In this document: positions 51,741 through 60,695 of the stretch, in pieces | How the letters are laid out: every line of letters begins with the position of its first letter | How positions within the stretch are numbered: the first letter of the stretch is position 1 | NCBI GenBank assembly: GCA_977016875.1 | Contig: CDRNST010000067.1 | Location: forward strand, 1,736,001 to 1,800,000 | Direction of reading: 5' to 3' | Length of the DNA: 64,000 nucleotides | DNA from: Pavona decussata | Lineage: Eukaryota | Translations under genes and position numbers: made by a program | Notes under the pieces: model-generated | Seen by the model: only the letters and a program-made list of their open reading frames with translations | What the model was told of the DNA's origin: nothing | Databases searched by the model: none

Positions 51741-53711
51741 TTGCATGTATAAAAACTATCGTCGGCAAAATGACATCACTTTTACATGCATAAAAACTGG
51801 TGTCTAGTTTTCACACAATAGCCAAAAGACACCAAATAGGCGATTTCAACATTGAAATTGGTGCCACCTGCTCCGAGAAAACCTACGTGGCTAACACACA
51901 GACGGAGTGGGAGAATTTAAGGCCTCGTTTTTACAGTGGTACAGGGCAATATTGTCTCCTCGGTGAGTATTATTACAAGGGTATGTGAATTAACAATAAC
52001 CATCAGCAAAAAGCCCAAAATATCCTGTTAAAATGGACATTGTCGAAAAAATATCCCTTACAACACCTTAAAATACAAATACTCCTCTCCAATAAGCCAT
52101 CTCTTGGTAGACGAGAATTAACGTCATTAACCCACTGCGGTTCTTGTCGTTTTCACCAAATCTTCTATTTCAAGGGAATTTAAGAATCCCTTAGGCAGTT
52201 GGGAGGGTAGGGGTTATGGTGTTTGTATATATTACTTAGTAATATACAATCAGTAATTGGCTCAAGGACCAAATTATTGCCCAGTTTTGATTCCTTCATT
52301 GTTGTTCATTTATTACCACAGTACGCCTTCATGAAATCCAGTATAACATGGTTAAAGGAATCCCGTCAAAAAAGACGAAAAAGAAAATGGTAAGAGGACC
52401 TTACAAGCGTGTTGACAGTGTAGTTCAAGACGAAGACCTACTGCTGAAGCTCAGAAGTTACACTGCTCTTGTGGAGGAGTTCAGCTATTAAAGGGGAGAG
52501 GACCAAGAACAGCTTCTAGAGAAGTTTAAGAAGGGTGAGATTGTTGTCTGTTAAGATTCAGACTTTGCTGTTTTCATCTATTTGGGATCCTTTTTTTGTA
52601 CCTTGTACAAAAGTGACTACCGTAAGTCACTATACATTGTATTTACTTTTGCAGATGTTGAAAGTCATTATCCTGGATCCCGGGCAATCACGGAACTACA
52701 CATCGTATGTGGTTAGATGTGGAGTGACTAGAGCTGTGAACAGATTACGATACCATCAGCACTTCAGGGACAGTATGTATACTTCATTTGTCGGAAATTC
52801 TCGAGTTATGCATCATGAGACGGAATATTATTTAATAGTGATTTGTGCATGTAGATTGTAGATGTAACTAGGACCCCCGTGAAGATATTATGGCAAACTT
52901 TTACGTCTATTGAAAAGATATGGATCAGTTGTTATAACATAAAAGTGAGGTTGTTCGTTTTGCAGATCATGAAATTAAATTAGATACGAGCTTCGATATA
53001 ATTTGGTTGGACTCATGAAAAGTTCGATGTTTGACCCGAGCCTAGTTCAAGTCAGTTACTAACTGCATCCCTTTTATTTTTTTTTGTCAGATCACCGAAA
53101 AACGTGCAAGAATCCTGTTAGAAGTGAAGACATCCGTGACCTTTTTGCTGCGTCCAGAAAAAAGTAAAAATGAATTATTGACTGTGATTACCGTGAACTG
53201 TTAGTGACCTTGTCCTTTTGGTGCAAATCAAATAAAGGAGACATACTTACCAATCAATGTTGTATTATTTCTTTGTTTAGTGATCCCAGTGAAACTAATA
53301 CAAGCGGTACTAATGACAGTGATTTAGATAACGCCCTAAGTGATTCAGAGAAGTCAGAGGAAGGTTTATTTCTGGAAGTTAACATTATTTTTCCCCTTAA
53401 AAGTGTTAAAAAGATTCGCTATTTAAGTTAGTGCGAGTGAGCAAAAGTGGGCGGTTGGTGTCTATATGGCTGACAGTGTGATTGAACAGAATACCGTATG
53501 TCGGTTACAGGACACGCTATTTCAACTCATAAAGCCAAACTACGTAATTAGTTGGTAAGAGAAATGATGTACGTTTACATGTGAAAATCTTTCAACATTT
53601 GGGTAGTTCACAACAGTAACAGAAAGTAGGTTTGAAATAATGAAAAATGATGAAGAAAGGTTTGAAATAATGACTTCGAATGCGTTTTTTTTAATTCTTT
53701 GACAAAGGTGT

Positions 53712-54000
53712 CTAAAACTGTGGGCCCCAAACCTTATGTCACGCACAAAATATGTCGCACCTTGCACGCCTGTTTCCTACATGTAAATCCGCTCTCATAG
53801 GCGCGACTTTACGTAATGTAACATTTATTTTAGTTTCTTATGTAGGTATATACACTGTATACAGGCAACTTATGTTGTATTGTAAAACTCCCTGACGAAG
53901 TGCGTTAGTCACACGAAACGCGTAGGAGAAAAGGTCAGAAAATAGATCGTTTTACAACTCTTAGAGTTTGCAGAAGTGCTACTCACTAGTTCATTCTTAA
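53712..54000 (+). repeat. Second copy of the Penelope-like 3'/pseudo-LTR segment (first copy ~31990-32290), intronic
   Basis: CTAAAACTGTGGGCCCCAAA..TTATGTCACGCACAAAATATGTC ... GTGCTACTCACTAGTT is shared by both copies. Confidence 0.9.
53888..53928 (+). ncRNA. Minimal type-I hammerhead ribozyme motif
   Basis: CTCC-CTGACGA-A-GTG(loop)CAC-GAAA-CGCG-TA-GGAG, giving stem I CTCC/GGAG, the conserved core, a palindromic CGCG stem III and a GUA cleavage triplet. The copy at ~32168-32210 has core mutations. Confidence 0.7.
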
Positions 54001-57000
54001 AAAAAAATTAAAAAATAAAAAAAATCCATAAAAAAACTGATGTCATCCCAATTGATCTATTAAATCAGTTAATCAGTTAATAGACCAAACCAAAATAATT
54101 GGATGTTTTCCTTAATTACCAGATGTTTAGAGGTACTAGACCCAGTGGTAGTGGCTCTTCCAAGAGAACTTCAGACTGGAAACCTTGAAAAAGATCACAT
54201 TTTTTACAAAGTGATTACAAACGCAATAGAATCTGCCCAAACGTCGGGAGATGCCAGGCAGCAGTTTTCGCATGATAAAGACGTCATGTTGTTCTCCAAA
54301 ACTCTTGGATTCCACAGCCATGACAAAATTATGAACTTGCTTCGTGGCCCAGGTTTCAAGGGCTAGAAGAAAGGAGGTACATATGACTTTCAATGGAAAG
54401 ACTGGAATCTCCCAGTTGTTCCCTCAAAGAAAACCAGAGGAAAAGATAAAGGCGGCTATACTACAAAAGATGGCATCATTAAAAGCCTTCTGGTCTCCTA
54501 TCTCTTACTTGCACAAGTGGAAGAAAGCAGGGTGGTCCCACTGATTGAACAGCCACATCTCTGCATTATTCCGGTTTGGCTACCGACGGAATAAGCATCA
54601 AACCTGGTCTACAATTTGACACTCGTCTTAAAGATTTGGTAGGGCTTCTTTTCCCAGTCAAATTGGAGTATGTCAAGACAAACCCATCACCTGACCCAGC
54701 CACTTTGAAGGCCTTGTTTGTTACCGAGGTGAATTGCGGAATAATTACTTCGTTGGATAACAATTTGTCCCTTCCAGTTGGCGTAGAGTACTCTGGAAAA
54801 AAGCGTTTCCGGTGAAAATACGGCAGAACGCATCCAAAAGCGCGTCACACAACTGCAAATTTGTCTGCGATGTCTTATGCAAAGCACATCAACGGACATG
54901 AATGTTATTGTCGGTTCGAGGGAGTGCTGCTCAAGCCGTTGTGAAGGTATGTTAACGTAAGTTAACTGCTTTGTTTTGACTAATATTGGTCAAACTGTAT
55001 TATAGTAGCTTTCAAGTCATCTATAGCTAAAAGTCTTTCTTTTTCTCGTACACAACTCGAATAAGAATGAAATGCAGGCTTAATTACAGAAAATAAAACC
55101 GATCAGTGAGGTTAATGAGTGATTAATCTGCAGTTACGCTGATAGTCAGTCATGAGCTCCCACCTGGATTAAAAATATATCACCTCATTGTTAACGCTTA
55201 AAAGGTAGTTACAGAAGTTTGTTACCATTCTTAATGAAGTATTCATTTCAAGCATGCTTAACACTATTATCTAGTAAGATATAATGATTGAAGAGTAAAG
55301 ATATAATTATATTTACTTTACTTTTCCATATAGCTTGTCTACAAAGTGCAACAGTTTGCCCAGCCTGCAGTGAAAAAGGGCAGACGTCTATAGGTGGTCC
55401 ATTGCGCGCCTGTGAGCCGTGTTTGGGTTCGGGGTGCAAGTGTGTGAAGTTGATAGTACTTGCGTGGACAGCAGATTGCGAAGAGAGTAACAAGCAGGCC
55501 ATGGAACAGATAATACAACTTTCCGCAAATGGGGAAATTGCTGAACATCTGAAGTACCTAAGGCCGTTTCCTGAAGCAGTTCACCTTGCAAAGTGCTGAT
55601 TTATACTACAATGGTGAACAATTTAATCTGTCGAATCTTCGTGTGCTGTATAACGATGGAGATGAAGGCATCAAACGACACATGCGACAAGAAGTCACCC
55701 TCAGCGCAATACGAAATCGTGATAGAATGTCAGTGGAAGCCATGCTTTTCATCGCAAAACCATCCGTAAGAGGGATTATAGGTAAAATACCACAACTGGT
55801 GCAGACCGTTATCCCTGAGCCTTTCCGCCTGTACAAAGGGAACGCCAAAGGGGTTTTGGTAAACCCTACCGGCATCTGTGTTGCTGATCATGGTAGCATT
55901 TTTATAACTGACAACAAAAAGTCCTGCTTGTTCCTTGCACGTGTTCACTATCCTGTTGAGATTACAGAGTTGTCCAAGTCCTTACAAGGCCCGAATGGTG
56001 TCATCTATGTGAATGGAGTCGTCTTCGTAGCTGATACGGGCATGGAAGATTAGCATACAAAGCCGTGGTGCCGTCAGTCTTCACAGACCCGAAGAAGATG
56101 AAAGTTGACGAGTTACGCGTTCAACTAGAAGAAAGAAATATCCCAATTGTCGCAGAACCAAGGAAGAAAGATTCAGTGGGCGCATTAGCAAACTGGATCT
56201 CCGATCAAAGAAAAGCAGTTAAATATTCAGCAACCGACCTAAGTACGCTACCCCCTGATAAAGAAATCAAATGTCCCTTGGCTGTAACTGCTGCTGCAAC
56301 AGACATGCTTATGGTTACTGACAGTCACTCTCACTGTGTACTCCAAGTGACTATAAACAACAATGGTGCATGCTTACTAGGAACTGTCAGTGAGCTAATG
56401 AAGTTACCTGAACCCTCAGAGCCTTATGGGTTGGCCTTTGCAGGATCTGTACATTGCAGACTCGAGCAATAACGGTGGGATTACGAAGTTCAACCTCCCA
56501 ACTTCACAGAGTGTTATCCTTGTGAAAAACGGCACACCACTCTGCCAAACTGTCCACGGGGTAAATGTGACCAATGACGGAAACGTTATATTCACTGACC
56601 GAGATTCTCGCATGCTTCGAGTTCTATGACAAGATGGCACACATACAGAGATAAAGGTGCTTGCTGGATCCGGTGCGGAGGTCTCGAAAGACGATTCCTA
56701 CCTTGCTGCTTCGTTTGCGCAGCCAACAGCCTTATGTGTTGAGGGAAAAACTGTCTTTGTTGCTGACACGGCTGCAGGAGCTGTTAAACTGGTCACACCT
56801 ACAAGTTCTCTATGCAAATTTCTAGAGATTCTTGATCTGCTCTGCAAGATGTTTGGAGTTCATCTAAAAGGAGTACCAGGAGAAATCCATGCCATCGAGG
56901 AAGCTGTTTCATCACTTCATGAAATGAGTTCCATGTTTGAACAATGGGTTGATGAAGTGCAAACAAAAATGGGGAAAAAAGTTACCACGCAGGGTCCGCA

Positions 57001-58239
57001 GGGAACAATTTTCTCAAAGAGTCGCCGCAGCTTAGAAATTTTGACAGAGTCACTGACAGTGCTGGGAGGATTTCTGGACCACACAAGTCCAGAGTTTCAC
57101 AGCGTTCTCAAGTTGGCAGTGATCCTGACCCTTGTCGTTGAGAACTTTTTCAGCAAAATGTGTTCAAGAAATGACATGCCAACTGTGTTGGAATTTGCGC
57201 ACTTGTTTGCCCCCACCATCCGCGACTCCTTGAAGCAGCTGACAGACACTAGCTTCTTGTATTACACATTGCCTTCAACTTACTATGAAGCGCCAGAAAC
57301 AATGAAACTTGCGTTTCGGGCTCTGCCGTCAATTCCTTCTCCGCCTTCGGTACAAATGCCAAAAGAAGATCAACATTGATGAGAAATTGAAGGGACAACT
57401 TTGGAAAGCCTGTGCGCCAACTGACGGTGCGAAACCAAAGTACGAAAGATAACGTTGGCACCCTTCCCATATTTGCCTATACCACTCCTGACCCTCCTCC
57501 ACAACCTTTGAATTTCTCTGCCATGGTCAACCAGACGGTAAGGATAGCCAGATGATGACCCGAACTCCTATTTTGACCTTGAATTATACGTCCCCACCTT
57601 TGAAGACTGTTTGTACTTCACCCACCACGGAAAGGTCAACGTTCATCGTGATGCAGTCATTCGTATCGTCTATGAAAGAGATTTACAGAAACGAGAGAGT
57701 TTCATAAATCTCACCGTGGAGTTCTATGGGACATTGTTAAGCGATCTCCATGATGTTGTGGACCTTTTGCCTGAAGGTGAAAGCTGTGAGGAGACCAGCA
57801 ATCAAGAGTCTGAGGAGGAAAACGCTACACAAGTGTCTACTGAAACCAGACCAGTACGGACATTACATGGCAAAACAGTAATTCGGCCAAATCGCTTGGA
57901 CTTATAACTATGAGCAGTGCAAATAAGTACACATCGATGAATCTTGTTCCTGATTTTGATATATTCTTTTAAAAAGAATCACATAGATGTCACTTTATTG
58001 ACTTTATTAGCCCTGTATGGTCCCCGTAAGATAATATTATTAAGCCAAATTCTGACAGGGACATTCCAATGTTTCAAATCTTCGGTGCGGCAGTGGACGA
58101 AATTCCGACAACAACATAAGTACCTTCCGAAATTGCGACATGATCAGGTTTGAAATTCAGATGGGGACATGCATACCCCCCCCCCCCCCCCCCAACAGGG
58201 CCTCAGAAGCAGCTAGATCAATTTTAGACGTCATGGAAC

Positions 58240-60695
58240 ACACTCAAAAAGATCTCGAGAATCTTCCATCCCTCCCACAAGCCTTCCCCAACATTTCTCA
58301 ATTACACTTTGACACCGCCGGACTTGCTAAGCTGTTAGGTAATCTCGACATCAAAAAAGCCGCTGGCCCAGATCAGATCCCCTGCTGGGTATTGAAAAAT
58401 GCAGCTCAAGAAATCGCCCCATTCCTGCAACGGTTTTTCTCACTTTCATTGCAGATTGGGGACGTCCTCCTTGACTGGAAAAATGCAAACGTACATGCCA
58501 TCTTCAAAAAAGGAGACAGGTCACTGGCTTCGAACTACAGACCCATCTCCCTCACCTCTGTTTCTTGTAAGATCATGGAACACTTCATATTTAGTCACAT
58601 CATGTCCCACCTTGAGGAGTTTAAGATTCCATCCGACATCCAACATGGTTTTCGTAAATTTCATTAATGTGAAACCCAACTACTCACCACCCTCGATGAT
58701 CTTGCTAGAAACCTCGATCATGGCAAGCAAAGCGATATTATCCTGCTGGACTTTGCTAAAGCTTTTGATACCTTTGTACACCAAAGCCTTCTTCTCAAGC
58801 TACGCCATTACAGCGTACAAGGTTCAATCAACAAGTGGATTCAAGCTTGGCTTTGCTACAGGGAACAATCTGTTTTGGCGGAAGGAGTTAAATCAGCACC
58901 TGTACCAGTCATGTCTGGCGTTCCACAGGGCACTGTACTTGGCCCCTTAATGTTCCTTATCTACATTAACAATATAGGTGTAAATATAGAGTCCCGCATC
59001 TGTCTCTGCCAATGATACCCTCTTATATGCAACGGTGAGCAGCAAGGATGACGCCAATACCATACAGCAAGACCTTGATAGCTCAGTTGCCTGGACCAAT
59101 CTCTGGCAAATGTCCCTTAATCGTGACAAATGCAAGATCCTGAATGTTTATCGATCAAAAAATCCAATCAACCATCAGTACAGTATGGGGTTCCTTTGGA
59201 ATCTGTATCCCACCATCCGTACTTGGGAGTTGAATTGTCTTCCAATTTGAATAGGAGCTTTCATTGCTGCCGCAGCGAGGGTGCCTGAAGCCACCGAGAA
59301 AGGCAGCAACTCTAATCGGCACAGAAATATACTTATGGGGCTTTCTTGCAAAATGCAAAGGATTGTGGTCACGCAAAGATCAAAGGAACAAAGCATTGTG
59401 GTTAATTTTGTGGGCACCACAATGCAATGCGCTGCTTTGCTTTTTCCAGTTTCAGACAGAGCAAGGGAGAGAAATCAAGGTGAGTATTTTTTGTCGTTTT
59501 GAATGCCCTTGATTTTGCGGAATTTTTCTACTTTGTTTATATTTTCTAAACTGCATCTCTTTTAATTTCAGAACGTAATATATTTGCAATTTCAGCGTCA
59601 TGTATATCCTCAAGGTAAAAGTGAAGGTAAATTCTTGAATGTTGTGTTGTTGATTACGTAAGCTTATCTGCATTGATTATTTCCAACTTTGTTCATTTTT
59701 AAATACAAAACAAAGGTACTCAAGCTATGTACTTACACTATAATTTGAACACTACCTGCCTACAGTATTTCATTCCAATCGTGCAATCTTCTGATTATCA
59801 CGATTTTTTTTCAGCAGGGCAAAACTGCATTTTAGCTCAGCTTAAGTCATGAATATGTGAATAACATACACATTTGAAATGATTTACTGGATGTTAGTCG
59901 TTTTCAATGACATGCTTGACATGTAAACAACATTTTATTTTCTAATAGATTTTTATTTACGCAAATCATTGTATTCACTGCAACCTAAATTTAAGTTTTC
60001 CATTGCTTCCTTTGGTGTGAATTTTCACACTTTGTTCTAAACTTGATCACTTGGTGCATGTTTATACGACTCGTTCCAAACTTGATCACTTGGTGTATGT
60101 TTATACGCCCCGTAACACAAAAGTTAGATTCATTTATATCTTACCAAATAAACAAGTGCAACAGGAAACAACATTTCAAATGTCCGATATTTTGAGCCTC
60201 GTAGCTGTTTTACAGGTTTTATGTAATCACTCTAATAGAGGGCGTCTTAGGAACGCTCACTACTTAGTAACAATAAGTATTAGTCAGAAGTCTGTTCCAC
60301 CGTTAAGTAAAATCACACTACAATTTATTGTATATTTAACAGCTTCAAACAAATACAATTGTAAGTTCTGTTTCCTTTGCACTTTCAACATGTCATTAAA
60401 TAGACATTTCCGTTGTTATACACGTTTTTTGTCATCACTGCGTTTTCCCATTTCACATAGGCACCCTGGGTCATTTTCAACTCTTTCAACCTCCCCTCCT
60501 TATTCTCATCATAACAGCACTCACCTGCCTCCCCAAGGCAGCATTCACTCCCGTTCCAGTATACTAGTATAGAGAATATTGTAGAGAAGGCTAACCGGTC
60601 CCTTGGTTTCATCAGACGTAATCTTTATTCCTGTCCAGAAAGTGTTAAAAGTCAGGCCAATCCCATCCCCATTCGTCCTTGTCTGGAATACACCG
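58240..60695 (+). mobile_element. CR1/jockey-group LINE RT fragment interrupted by a ~1.3-kb insertion (~59250-60568)
   Basis: KAAGPDQIP, NYRPISLTS, QHGFRK, LDFAKAFD, SGVPQGTVLGP and YLGVELSSNL. Resumes as IENIVEKANRSLGFIRRNL...PCLEY at ~60569. Confidence 0.85.

Follow-up and report, generated by a model that had tools for sequence, protein, structure and literature searches.

Can a transposase carry a complete β-propeller within its catalytic core? This question is raised by a locus of Pavona decussata in a stretch of 64,000 nucleotides (nt) of contig CDRNST010000067.1 (assembly GCA_977016875.1, positions 1,736,001–1,800,000 of the forward strand)—in the following referred to as the window, with coordinates counted from its first letter. 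The initial annotation of the window had read positions 52348–57907 as a decayed P-element-like transposase with an NHL propeller and a SAP-like domain built into its core. The locus is very probably the dead transposase gene of a cut-and-paste DNA transposon belonging to a large unnamed lineage most closely related to the P element/THAP9 superfamily. The window copy itself is a pseudogene of a P-like transposase, located on the + strand between approximately 54112 and 57907; it is unable to encode a protein and, taken on its own, is an ordinary dead copy.

The motifs and acidic residues quoted in the initial annotation are all found on the + strand, as judged by a translation search of the window. 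The first Asp motif ATDGISIKPGLQFD lies at 54579–54620 (D codon 54585) and the second, AWTADCEESNKQAM, at 55462–55503 (D codon 55474). They are followed by FPEAVHLAK (55567–55593), RDRMSV (55718–55735, within RNRDRMSV), TLVVENFFSKM (57128–57160, E codon 57140), and NDMPTVLEF (57170–57196). The six NHL-type repeats are likewise present—at 55862–55912, 55988–56038, 56272–56325, 56419–56464, 56549–56602, and 56720–56770—and so is the cluster of approximately 12 Cys between the two Asp motifs. The first coding block (54112–54946), delimited by tblastn and translations, comprises a helical, helix-turn-helix-like N-terminal region, the first RNase H-like part, and the start of the Cys cluster. The second block (55334–55596) holds the rest of this zinc-type module, strand β4, the second Asp in ADCEES, and the PExVHxxK motif at 55567–55593; its Cys columns, second Asp, and His are invariant or nearly so across 30 homologs. 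The first helical part of the insertion domain with RNRDRMSV follows at 55601–55861. It leads into a six-bladed NHL propeller (55862–56770), recognized by Pfam NHL, the family profile, and a homolog model, with a SAP-like helix-extension-helix motif (56089–56148) between blades 2 and 3. Between 56771 and 57376, the insertion domain resumes with its second, helical part and is followed by RNase H helix α4, which bears Glu 57140 (LVVENFF), and by NDMPTVLEF. The C-terminal region (57379–57907), identified by tblastn to L025, P0002, and P0003, features the stretch GxxVRQ..TKD..GTLP at 57379–57528 and then a degenerate acidic tail.

The decay of this copy amounts to approximately seven frameshifts and six in-frame stops, located by tblastn and translations. 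The stop at 54364 and frame changes near 54580 and 54800 disrupt the first block, a frameshift near 55598 separates the second block from the insertion domain, and the propeller carries frameshifts near 56040 and 56440 and a stop at 56627. Further frame changes near 57378 and 57530 and stops at 57377, 57388, 57539, and 57545 affect the C-terminal region. The longest intact open reading frame (ORF) spans 56657–57379 and encodes 240 amino acids (aa). A contig assembled from a DNA run is identical to the window over 54028–57232 with zero differences; the frameshifts in this range are, hence, not specific to the assembly, the run being possibly from the same sample.

The 240-aa piece yields at least 98 matches by tblastn in the 602-Mb genome of the same species, several of them inside open frames of 1100–1200 codons. 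The intact copies that the initial annotation had proposed to seek are present as single ORFs of approximately 1160–1210 aa. Intact ORFs are present in the C519 copy (L025:4591–8196, 1201 aa), the C66 copy (L026:4941–8522, 1193 aa), and the C86 copy (L024:5881–9357, 1158 aa), the last of which is the closest paralog of the window copy and stops short of the conserved C-terminal region. In each of the three, the Cys cluster, the second Asp motif, and the DxxH motif share one unbroken frame, and the NHL repeats, the SAP-like stretch, and LVVE(N/H)(L/F)F lie within the same frame. The tblastn matches to the window are collinear over approximately 54112–57528, with E values of 1e-115 for C86 and 1.5e-86 for C519, so that the motif likeness is far beyond chance. 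The window and C86 copies are the sole two members of their subfamily, with an amino-acid identity of 46–56%, and subfamilies that are just 20–25% identical keep the same order of parts. Residues ~253–933 of the C86 copy (L024:5881–9357) consist of three exact tandem copies of a ~227-aa segment with the SAP motif and four blades, which stem either from a duplication of very recent date or from an artefact of the assembly.

The family extends far beyond this genome. A profile of the 390 N-terminal residues, from which the propeller was excluded, recovers 1199 clusters at 50% identity in public data, 179 of them with E <1e-30, and a word search of public protein collections returned nine relatives. 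The public relatives are unnamed, the sole labels being 'unnamed protein product [Porites lobata]' and 'uncharacterized protein LOC106814524 [Priapulus caudatus]'. A collinear alignment was obtained for 30 full-length homologs, at least part of them from species other than Pavona decussata; each is a single protein with its parts in the same order. Priapulus caudatus contributes one of these homologs, and Porites lobata a member of one cluster. In the numbering of the homolog P0002, D118, D286, H322, D374, and a set of Cys are invariant in these 30 homologs, and all 26 members that extend as far as E869 retain this residue. The resulting spacings are 168 residues from D to D and 583 from D to E.

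Between the first two coding blocks of the window copy lies a GT..AG interruption of 387 nt in phase 1 (54947–55333, + strand), inside the Cys cluster. It is bordered by the donor AAG/GTATGT and by an acceptor consisting of a pyrimidine tract and ATAG/. The C86 paralog is interrupted at the identical codon by 373 nt, also GT..AG (L024 5545–5917), and removal of either interruption restores the family pattern C..CE.C. By its sequence, 54947–55333 reads as a real phase-1 intron of the window/C86 subfamily and as the sole true intron in the window copy; the C519 and C66 subfamilies are intronless at this point. The remaining 'exons' of the initial annotation are mostly frameshifted pieces of one continuous coding region.

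Is the catalytic core that of a P-type transposase? Pfam scans of the window copy, whose pieces were searched separately, return NHL and a weak SAP match and no transposase family. Among the family members, the sole transposase family to appear is PF21787 (TNP-like RNase H, N-terminal part), which stays below threshold in 5 of 7 and in 4 of 30 members, with best E values of 1.9e-4 to 5.6e-4 and a top score of 20.7 bits versus a cut-off of 24.6; PF21789 has no match among the 30. Canonical P/THAP9-like ORFs of the same genome reach 75–90 bits for PF21787 and also feature PF21788 and PF21789. These ORFs were aligned (A2) and used as the reference for hhalign. The N-terminal alignment of 30 members matches A2 with a probability of 89.7% and an E value of 1.9e-6 over 161 columns, pairing DGM.LKPG..D of the family with DEM.V...L.FD, the first-Asp motif of the P-like ORFs. 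From β4 onward, the match is weak (E 0.018) and collinear: it pairs (S/T)xD(S/C)ES.N with T.DGAS.N, PDxVHxGK with sDxxHLxKttRN, and DRMDV..eiSs (DRMSV in the window) with MRV.LAAQVlS at the start of the Pfam guanosine triphosphate (GTP)-binding insertion domain. The C-terminal block matches with E 6.5e-4 and has the Glu motifs paired. The three parts are collinear, and the D, D, DxxH, and E motifs are all paired with those of the P type. First runs with seven sequences were weak (probability 6–13%), and the comparison became convincing only after 30 sequences were included. A first C-terminal profile, compared with the PDB, has the Drosophila P transposase 6p5a as its top match (E 0.054), with VVENlFSEMR...DMP.vLeFayR of the family over VEHFFGSMRS...DHPTPLQFKYR. 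Searches of the PDB by sequence with the N-terminal profile gave nothing useful, and those with a single protein or the whole-family profile gave NHL proteins alone.

The AlphaFold2 model of P0002 (m9bff0ba71e1f, 1164 aa, from an alignment of 30 sequences) represents one confident multidomain protein, with a mean predicted local distance difference test (pLDDT) score of 82.7 and a predicted template modelling (pTM) score of 0.78. Fold searches with this full model of 1164 residues return propellers throughout, and P transposase does not appear among them; the comparison of the core required a separate model of residues 10–400 (391 residues, pLDDT 85.8). With this N-terminal model, Foldseek places 6pe2_A and 6p5a_A—the P element transposase strand-transfer complex—at the top with E values of 2.0e-7 and 3.1e-7 (probability 1.00). 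The next match follows at E 0.024, and the remainder are other Asp-Asp-Glu (DDE) transposases, RAG1, and integrases. In an exhaustive VIA-align comparison with 48,161 chains, 6p5a_A is the sole match with Z ≥8 (Z 11.0, 260 residues), aligned over 1–391 of the model and 154–426 of the chain; the runners-up are retroviral integrase cores with Z 5.8. The nearest ESM Atlas clusters by shape are THAP9/P-transposase families (PF21787, PF21788, and PF21789), with template modelling (TM) scores by query of 0.47–0.54. The sequence identity in the structural alignments to P transposase is approximately 10–14%. In the P0002 model, D118 lies in the long first strand (108–121), D286 right after the strand 275–285, and E869 in the helix 866–875, and the three residues are, hence, predicted to occupy the sites expected in an RNase H-type transposase (β1, post-β4, and α4). 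In the fly enzyme, catalysis relies on D230, D303, and E531 (PMC7776569), to which D118, D286, and E869 appear equivalent as judged by alignment and model. The P/THAP9-like core proposed in the initial annotation is, thus, borne out by Foldseek, VIA-align, and the pairing of the motifs it had named.

The architecture of the family is best described in P0002 numbering, from the model and the alignments. A helical N-terminal region is followed by β1–β3 and α1 (108–207); a Cys-rich module with approximately nine conserved Cys and one His (210–270), which is probably zinc-binding; β4, α2, and β5 (275–318); and helices carrying the DxxH..K and RN(R/K)DRMDV motifs (320–396). The propeller spans approximately 400–751 and is interrupted between blades 2 and 3 by three helices (503–539), the SAP-like part. 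Long helices (753–863), the Glu helix, the GxxVRQ..TKD..GTLP stretch, a small β-rich C-terminal domain, and an acidic tail complete the protein. In the P0002 model, the propeller sits between β5 and the helix α4 that bears the invariant Glu, and it is between β5 and α4 that the GTP-binding insertion domain of P transposase is located (PMC7776569). An insertion is, thus, present at this site; in VIA-align, the helices with which it begins can be matched to the P chain as far as residue 426, and its mid-part is taken up by the propeller.

The propeller itself is recognized at several levels. In the window copy, Pfam NHL scores 30.1 bits versus a cut-off of 20 (E 4.2e-7) in the piece 55586–56053 and has a second, weaker match in 56426–56629. 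The family profile matches NHL propellers of the PDB with E values down to 6.5e-22, and the P0002 model superimposes on the NHL domain of TRIM71 with Z 29.6 and a root-mean-square deviation of 2.7 Å over 255 residues (model range 400–750) and on the six-bladed Pizza6 with a TM score of 0.79. The repeats, hence, form one six-bladed propeller of the kind found in TRIM-NHL and NHLRC2-type proteins (TRIM71/LIN-41, Brat), with Pfam NHL over its cut-off in both. Unlike the TRIM-NHL proteins, the family has its propeller internal to a transposase and interrupted by SAP, and it has no RING, B-box, or coiled coil. The SAP-like motif proposed for the window copy is present and scores 18.1 bits (E 0.002), below the Pfam cut-off of 23.9. 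The C86 paralog shows it clearly, with three copies (95.1 bits, E 1.5e-27), and 5 of the 30 homologs have it, the best E value being 1.3e-11. The SAP motif is, hence, genuine for the family, and in the window copy it has either eroded or diverged.

Both termini show further features. The N-terminal extensions of some members give weak Pfam matches to zf-BED (E 0.0039) and PB1 (E 3.6e-4). Directly upstream of the C66 transposase ORF, a frame of 344 codons (L026:3855–4889) lies in the same frame with one stop codon between; this frame is similar to the N-terminus of P0082, a homolog of 1475 aa (E 4e-9), and features a CxxC...HxxxxHH-type finger and a PB1-like stretch. By these likenesses, it is likely the DNA-binding N-terminus of the C66 subfamily. 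At the C-terminus, residues ~1019–1136 of P0002 form a confident small β-rich domain with two helices that matches no Pfam family.

Do these proteins belong to mobile elements? On C38 lies a partner that is 96% identical to the C66 copy, and the two end regions of the C66 copy (query 21–911 and 8636–9870) are joined in many short copies. Some of these deletion derivatives retain 8163–8447, a 3' piece of the ORF, which ties the ORF to these ends. Eight C66-type copies with unrelated flanks start with (T)CGCCCCATGTAACGGAATCC and finish with its reverse complement. Their terminal inverted repeat (TIR), TCGCCCCATGTAACGGAATCC of approximately 21 bp, is present at both ends in all eight, with arrays of GGAATCCGGAATCC inside the ends. 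Target duplications, which were assessed in this one subfamily, flank seven of the eight copies (7, 7, 7, 6, 6, 6, and 6 bp; for example, AAAGGAG, CTCCTTT, and TGCTCAA), the eighth having none. The full C66-type element is approximately 10.5 kb long, and the elements of the intact relatives range from approximately 7.6 to 10.5 kb. A partner of 97% identity to the C519 copy lies on C351. The TIR of the C519 copy, CAGGGTCCCAAAGGGG of approximately 16 bp, is inverted at the ends, with GGGCTCC repeats inside; both end regions recur together elsewhere. The single C519-type copy that was read has the flanks ACACGATG and ACCATGGT without a clean target duplication. Cut-and-paste DNA transposons accompanied by nonautonomous derivatives are typically marked by such TIRs, subterminal repeats, and internally deleted copies, and the high identity of the intact copies (96–97%) suggests recent activity. 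The right end of the C519 element (L025:8303–8891) is formed by an extremely abundant repeat of ~590 bp, with 4560 first-look candidates and copies 90–95% identical, which is probably a derivative of the transposon family resembling a miniature inverted-repeat transposable element.

Where the initial annotation had suggested a search for TIRs and duplications of 7–8 bp, TIRs are, hence, found in two intact subfamilies and duplications of 6–7 bp in one; for the window copy, neither is detected, in keeping with its description as decayed and devoid of THAP and TIRs in Pfam and inverted-repeat searches. When the window copy was compared with the genome at the DNA level, no close copy emerged, so that its ends cannot be set by comparison. 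Short inverted pairs around it were rejected as TIRs since they are imperfect and without matching duplications.

The family shares with P element transposase (PDB 6P5A/6PE2) and THAP9 a helical DNA-binding region that precedes a split RNase H fold; the arrangement of D on β1, D after β4, DxxH..K, and E on α4 in (V)E(N/H)FF..R..P..L.F; and a large insertion between β5 and α4. With P elements, it also shares TIRs and subterminal repeats, internally deleted nonautonomous copies, and an acidic C-terminal tail. Unlike P/THAP9, it features a Cys-rich module of ~60 residues between α1 and β4 and a propeller-plus-SAP module of ~350 residues inside the insertion domain. Its proteins are 1150–1500 aa long, compared with the 569-residue 6p5a chain of P transposase.

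Several observations weigh against an assignment to the P/THAP9 stock or against parts of the function proposed for these proteins. The Pfam curated cut-off for any P-transposase family is reached by no member, and neither PF21788, the GTP-binding domain, nor THAP is detected in any Pfam scan of window pieces, paralogs, and 30 homologs. The target duplications are 6–7 bp long, whereas those of P elements are 8 bp (PMC7776569). The predicted catalytic placement of D118, D286, and E869 is read from secondary-structure position and not from spatial distances. What the propeller does is a matter of conjecture; it might serve as a dock for target DNA or chromatin, for RNA, or for a partner. The window/C86 subfamily has yielded no TIRs, duplications, or close copies, and it features a conserved intron. 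Because no Pfam cut-off is reached, THAP and a recognizable GTP-binding domain are lacking, and the duplications are of 6–7 bp, the family is best classed as a deep lineage within the P kind and not as a plain member of it.

The intron and the missing ends would also be accounted for if the window copy and its C86 paralog were a family of host genes that arose by domestication of such a transposase, the window copy being a pseudogenised duplicate. The two are a subfamily of their own (46–56% identical) without closer copies, their intron interrupts the identical codon, no TIRs are found around the window copy, the C86 copy retains ORFs in both exons, and the collinear similarity upstream could represent further exons. 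Yet the window copy is heavily broken, and the exact threefold SAP–NHL repeat of C86 and its missing C-terminal region are unlike a gene under selection. Moreover, the remaining family behaves as mobile elements, introns are usual in P elements too, and recognizable TIRs are lost from old copies. Domestication is, on balance, unlikely. It is hardly credible that the NHL–SAP segment merely seems to lie inside the transposase while being a gene of its own or a nested insertion, and this reading was rejected: the window copy does have frameshifts on both sides of its propeller, but three genome copies have unbroken ORFs that span the N-terminal core, the propeller, and the Glu helix. The same single-protein layout recurs in 30 collinear homologs, including that of Priapulus caudatus and the Porites lobata cluster, the AlphaFold2 model is one confident protein, and the order of parts is the same in subfamilies 20–25% identical. 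The initial view of propeller and SAP as parts of the catalytic core of one polypeptide, hence, stands—with P likeness found when the propeller region is left out, acidic residues invariant, and NHL within one ORF.

It is also improbable, to a similar degree as domestication, that the family lies in or nearer to another DDE superfamily of the DxxH group, such as Dada, Kolobok, hAT, or MuDR, with the P likeness reflecting a shared fold alone. Such a placement draws on the remote sequence likeness to P, on the lack of THAP and of a Pfam GTP-binding domain, on the weak BED-type finger at some N-termini (E 0.0039)—BED fingers occurring in hAT—and on duplications of 6–7 bp, as reported for Dada (PMC3706591). 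However, P transposase is the sole leading match in both structure searches, with hAT-like, Transib/RAG, Mos1, and integrase cores far lower; the Atlas neighbours are P/THAP9 families; and the sub-threshold transposase matches in Pfam are to PF21787 alone. No solved structure is known for Dada, Kolobok, or MuDR, and the structural comparison, hence, covers P, hAT-like, Transib/RAG, Mos1, and integrase cores. Dada resembles it as a DDE transposase with DxxH, duplications of 6–7 bp, zinc-finger motifs, and long proteins in aquatic invertebrates (PMC3706591). Compared by description, Dada differs by its many introns, by much shorter D–D and D–E spacings (68 and 176 residues versus 168 and 583 here), and by strict insertion into small nuclear RNA or transfer RNA genes, whereas the flanks of the eight copies here differ from one another; no propeller is reported for Dada (PMC3706591).

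If the preferred placement beside P/THAP9 is taken as a basis, the transposase would bind the subterminal repeats and TIRs, and the DNA would be cut and rejoined by the D-D-E site in the manner of P transposase. The propeller–SAP module, which is predicted to lie beside the active site, may help to grip the target DNA or chromatin or else a partner, either protein or RNA. It might also take on some of the regulation exerted by GTP in P elements. The insertion domain of P transposase contacts DNA at the transposon–target junction, and the enzyme is described as the sole transposase whose insertion domain binds GTP (PMC7776569). A whole propeller with SAP at this site is an unexpected way of building a transposase. 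The likeness to RAG1–RAG2 is an analogy only: the family shares with it a DDE recombinase with a six-bladed propeller adjoining the catalytic domain, and one homolog also has a weak PHD-finger match. The RAG1–RAG2 recombinase consists of a Transib-derived core and a six-bladed kelch propeller subunit. Unlike in the family, the RAG propeller is a separate protein with kelch repeats, and RAG/Transib cores are weak structural matches here (Foldseek E >0.03). A further-reaching reading, put forward tentatively and doubtful as a whole, takes the family as a distinct, widespread, and still active DDE lineage off the P/THAP9 stock, with its nucleotide-cofactor domain rebuilt around the NHL propeller and SAP. 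The module would then be a built-in RAG2-like partner that docks the active site onto target DNA, onto chromatin, or onto a cue of RNA or protein, and so controls the place or the time of integration.

As the initial annotation had supposed, no transposase of this architecture appears to be described: full-text literature searches returned no paper joining NHL or another propeller with a P-type transposase, although repeat libraries may still hold such elements. The family is large and unannotated, its members being labelled 'hypothetical' or 'uncharacterized', and its naming would improve repeat annotation in invertebrate genomes. Intact copies with known ends in this genome make activity, cofactor need, and the role of the propeller directly testable.

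The region 5' of the window copy may belong to the same unit. The start at 52348 given in the initial annotation is not supported: family homology begins at approximately 54112, and further upstream there are weak similarities to the C86 region alone. At 51794, 52520, and 53063, weak collinear tblastn matches correspond to L024 2412–2582, 3392–3469, and 3797–3877 upstream of C86 (E 3.5e-6, 1.8e-4, and 1e-3). The segment 51794–53150 (+ strand) is, hence, a possible upstream part—5' exons or element body—and matches no family in Pfam. Two putative RNA runs gave two short contigs of low depth, 56142–56394 and 56488–56668, identical or nearly so to the propeller region of the dead copy, and none across the splice joint of 54947–55333. 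These contigs could reflect low-level transcription or DNA carry-over. Directly 3' of the transposase copy and separate from it, a broken reverse-transcriptase coding region of the non-long terminal repeat retrotransposon type, recognized by eye, occupies 58140–59300 (+ strand) in the overlapping frames 58140–58667, 58399–58950, and 58875–59250.

The same genome harbours another unusual P-like family with giant ORFs of 1296–2401 aa. In these ORFs, PF21787 and PF21788 are joined by zinc knuckles of the CCHC type and by an exonuclease of the YqaJ type, through fusion or in the following ORF. They are located at L060:2710–6600 and 7551–9485 (C167), at L062:2269–9474 on the minus strand (C88), and at L061:4978–8673 (C84).

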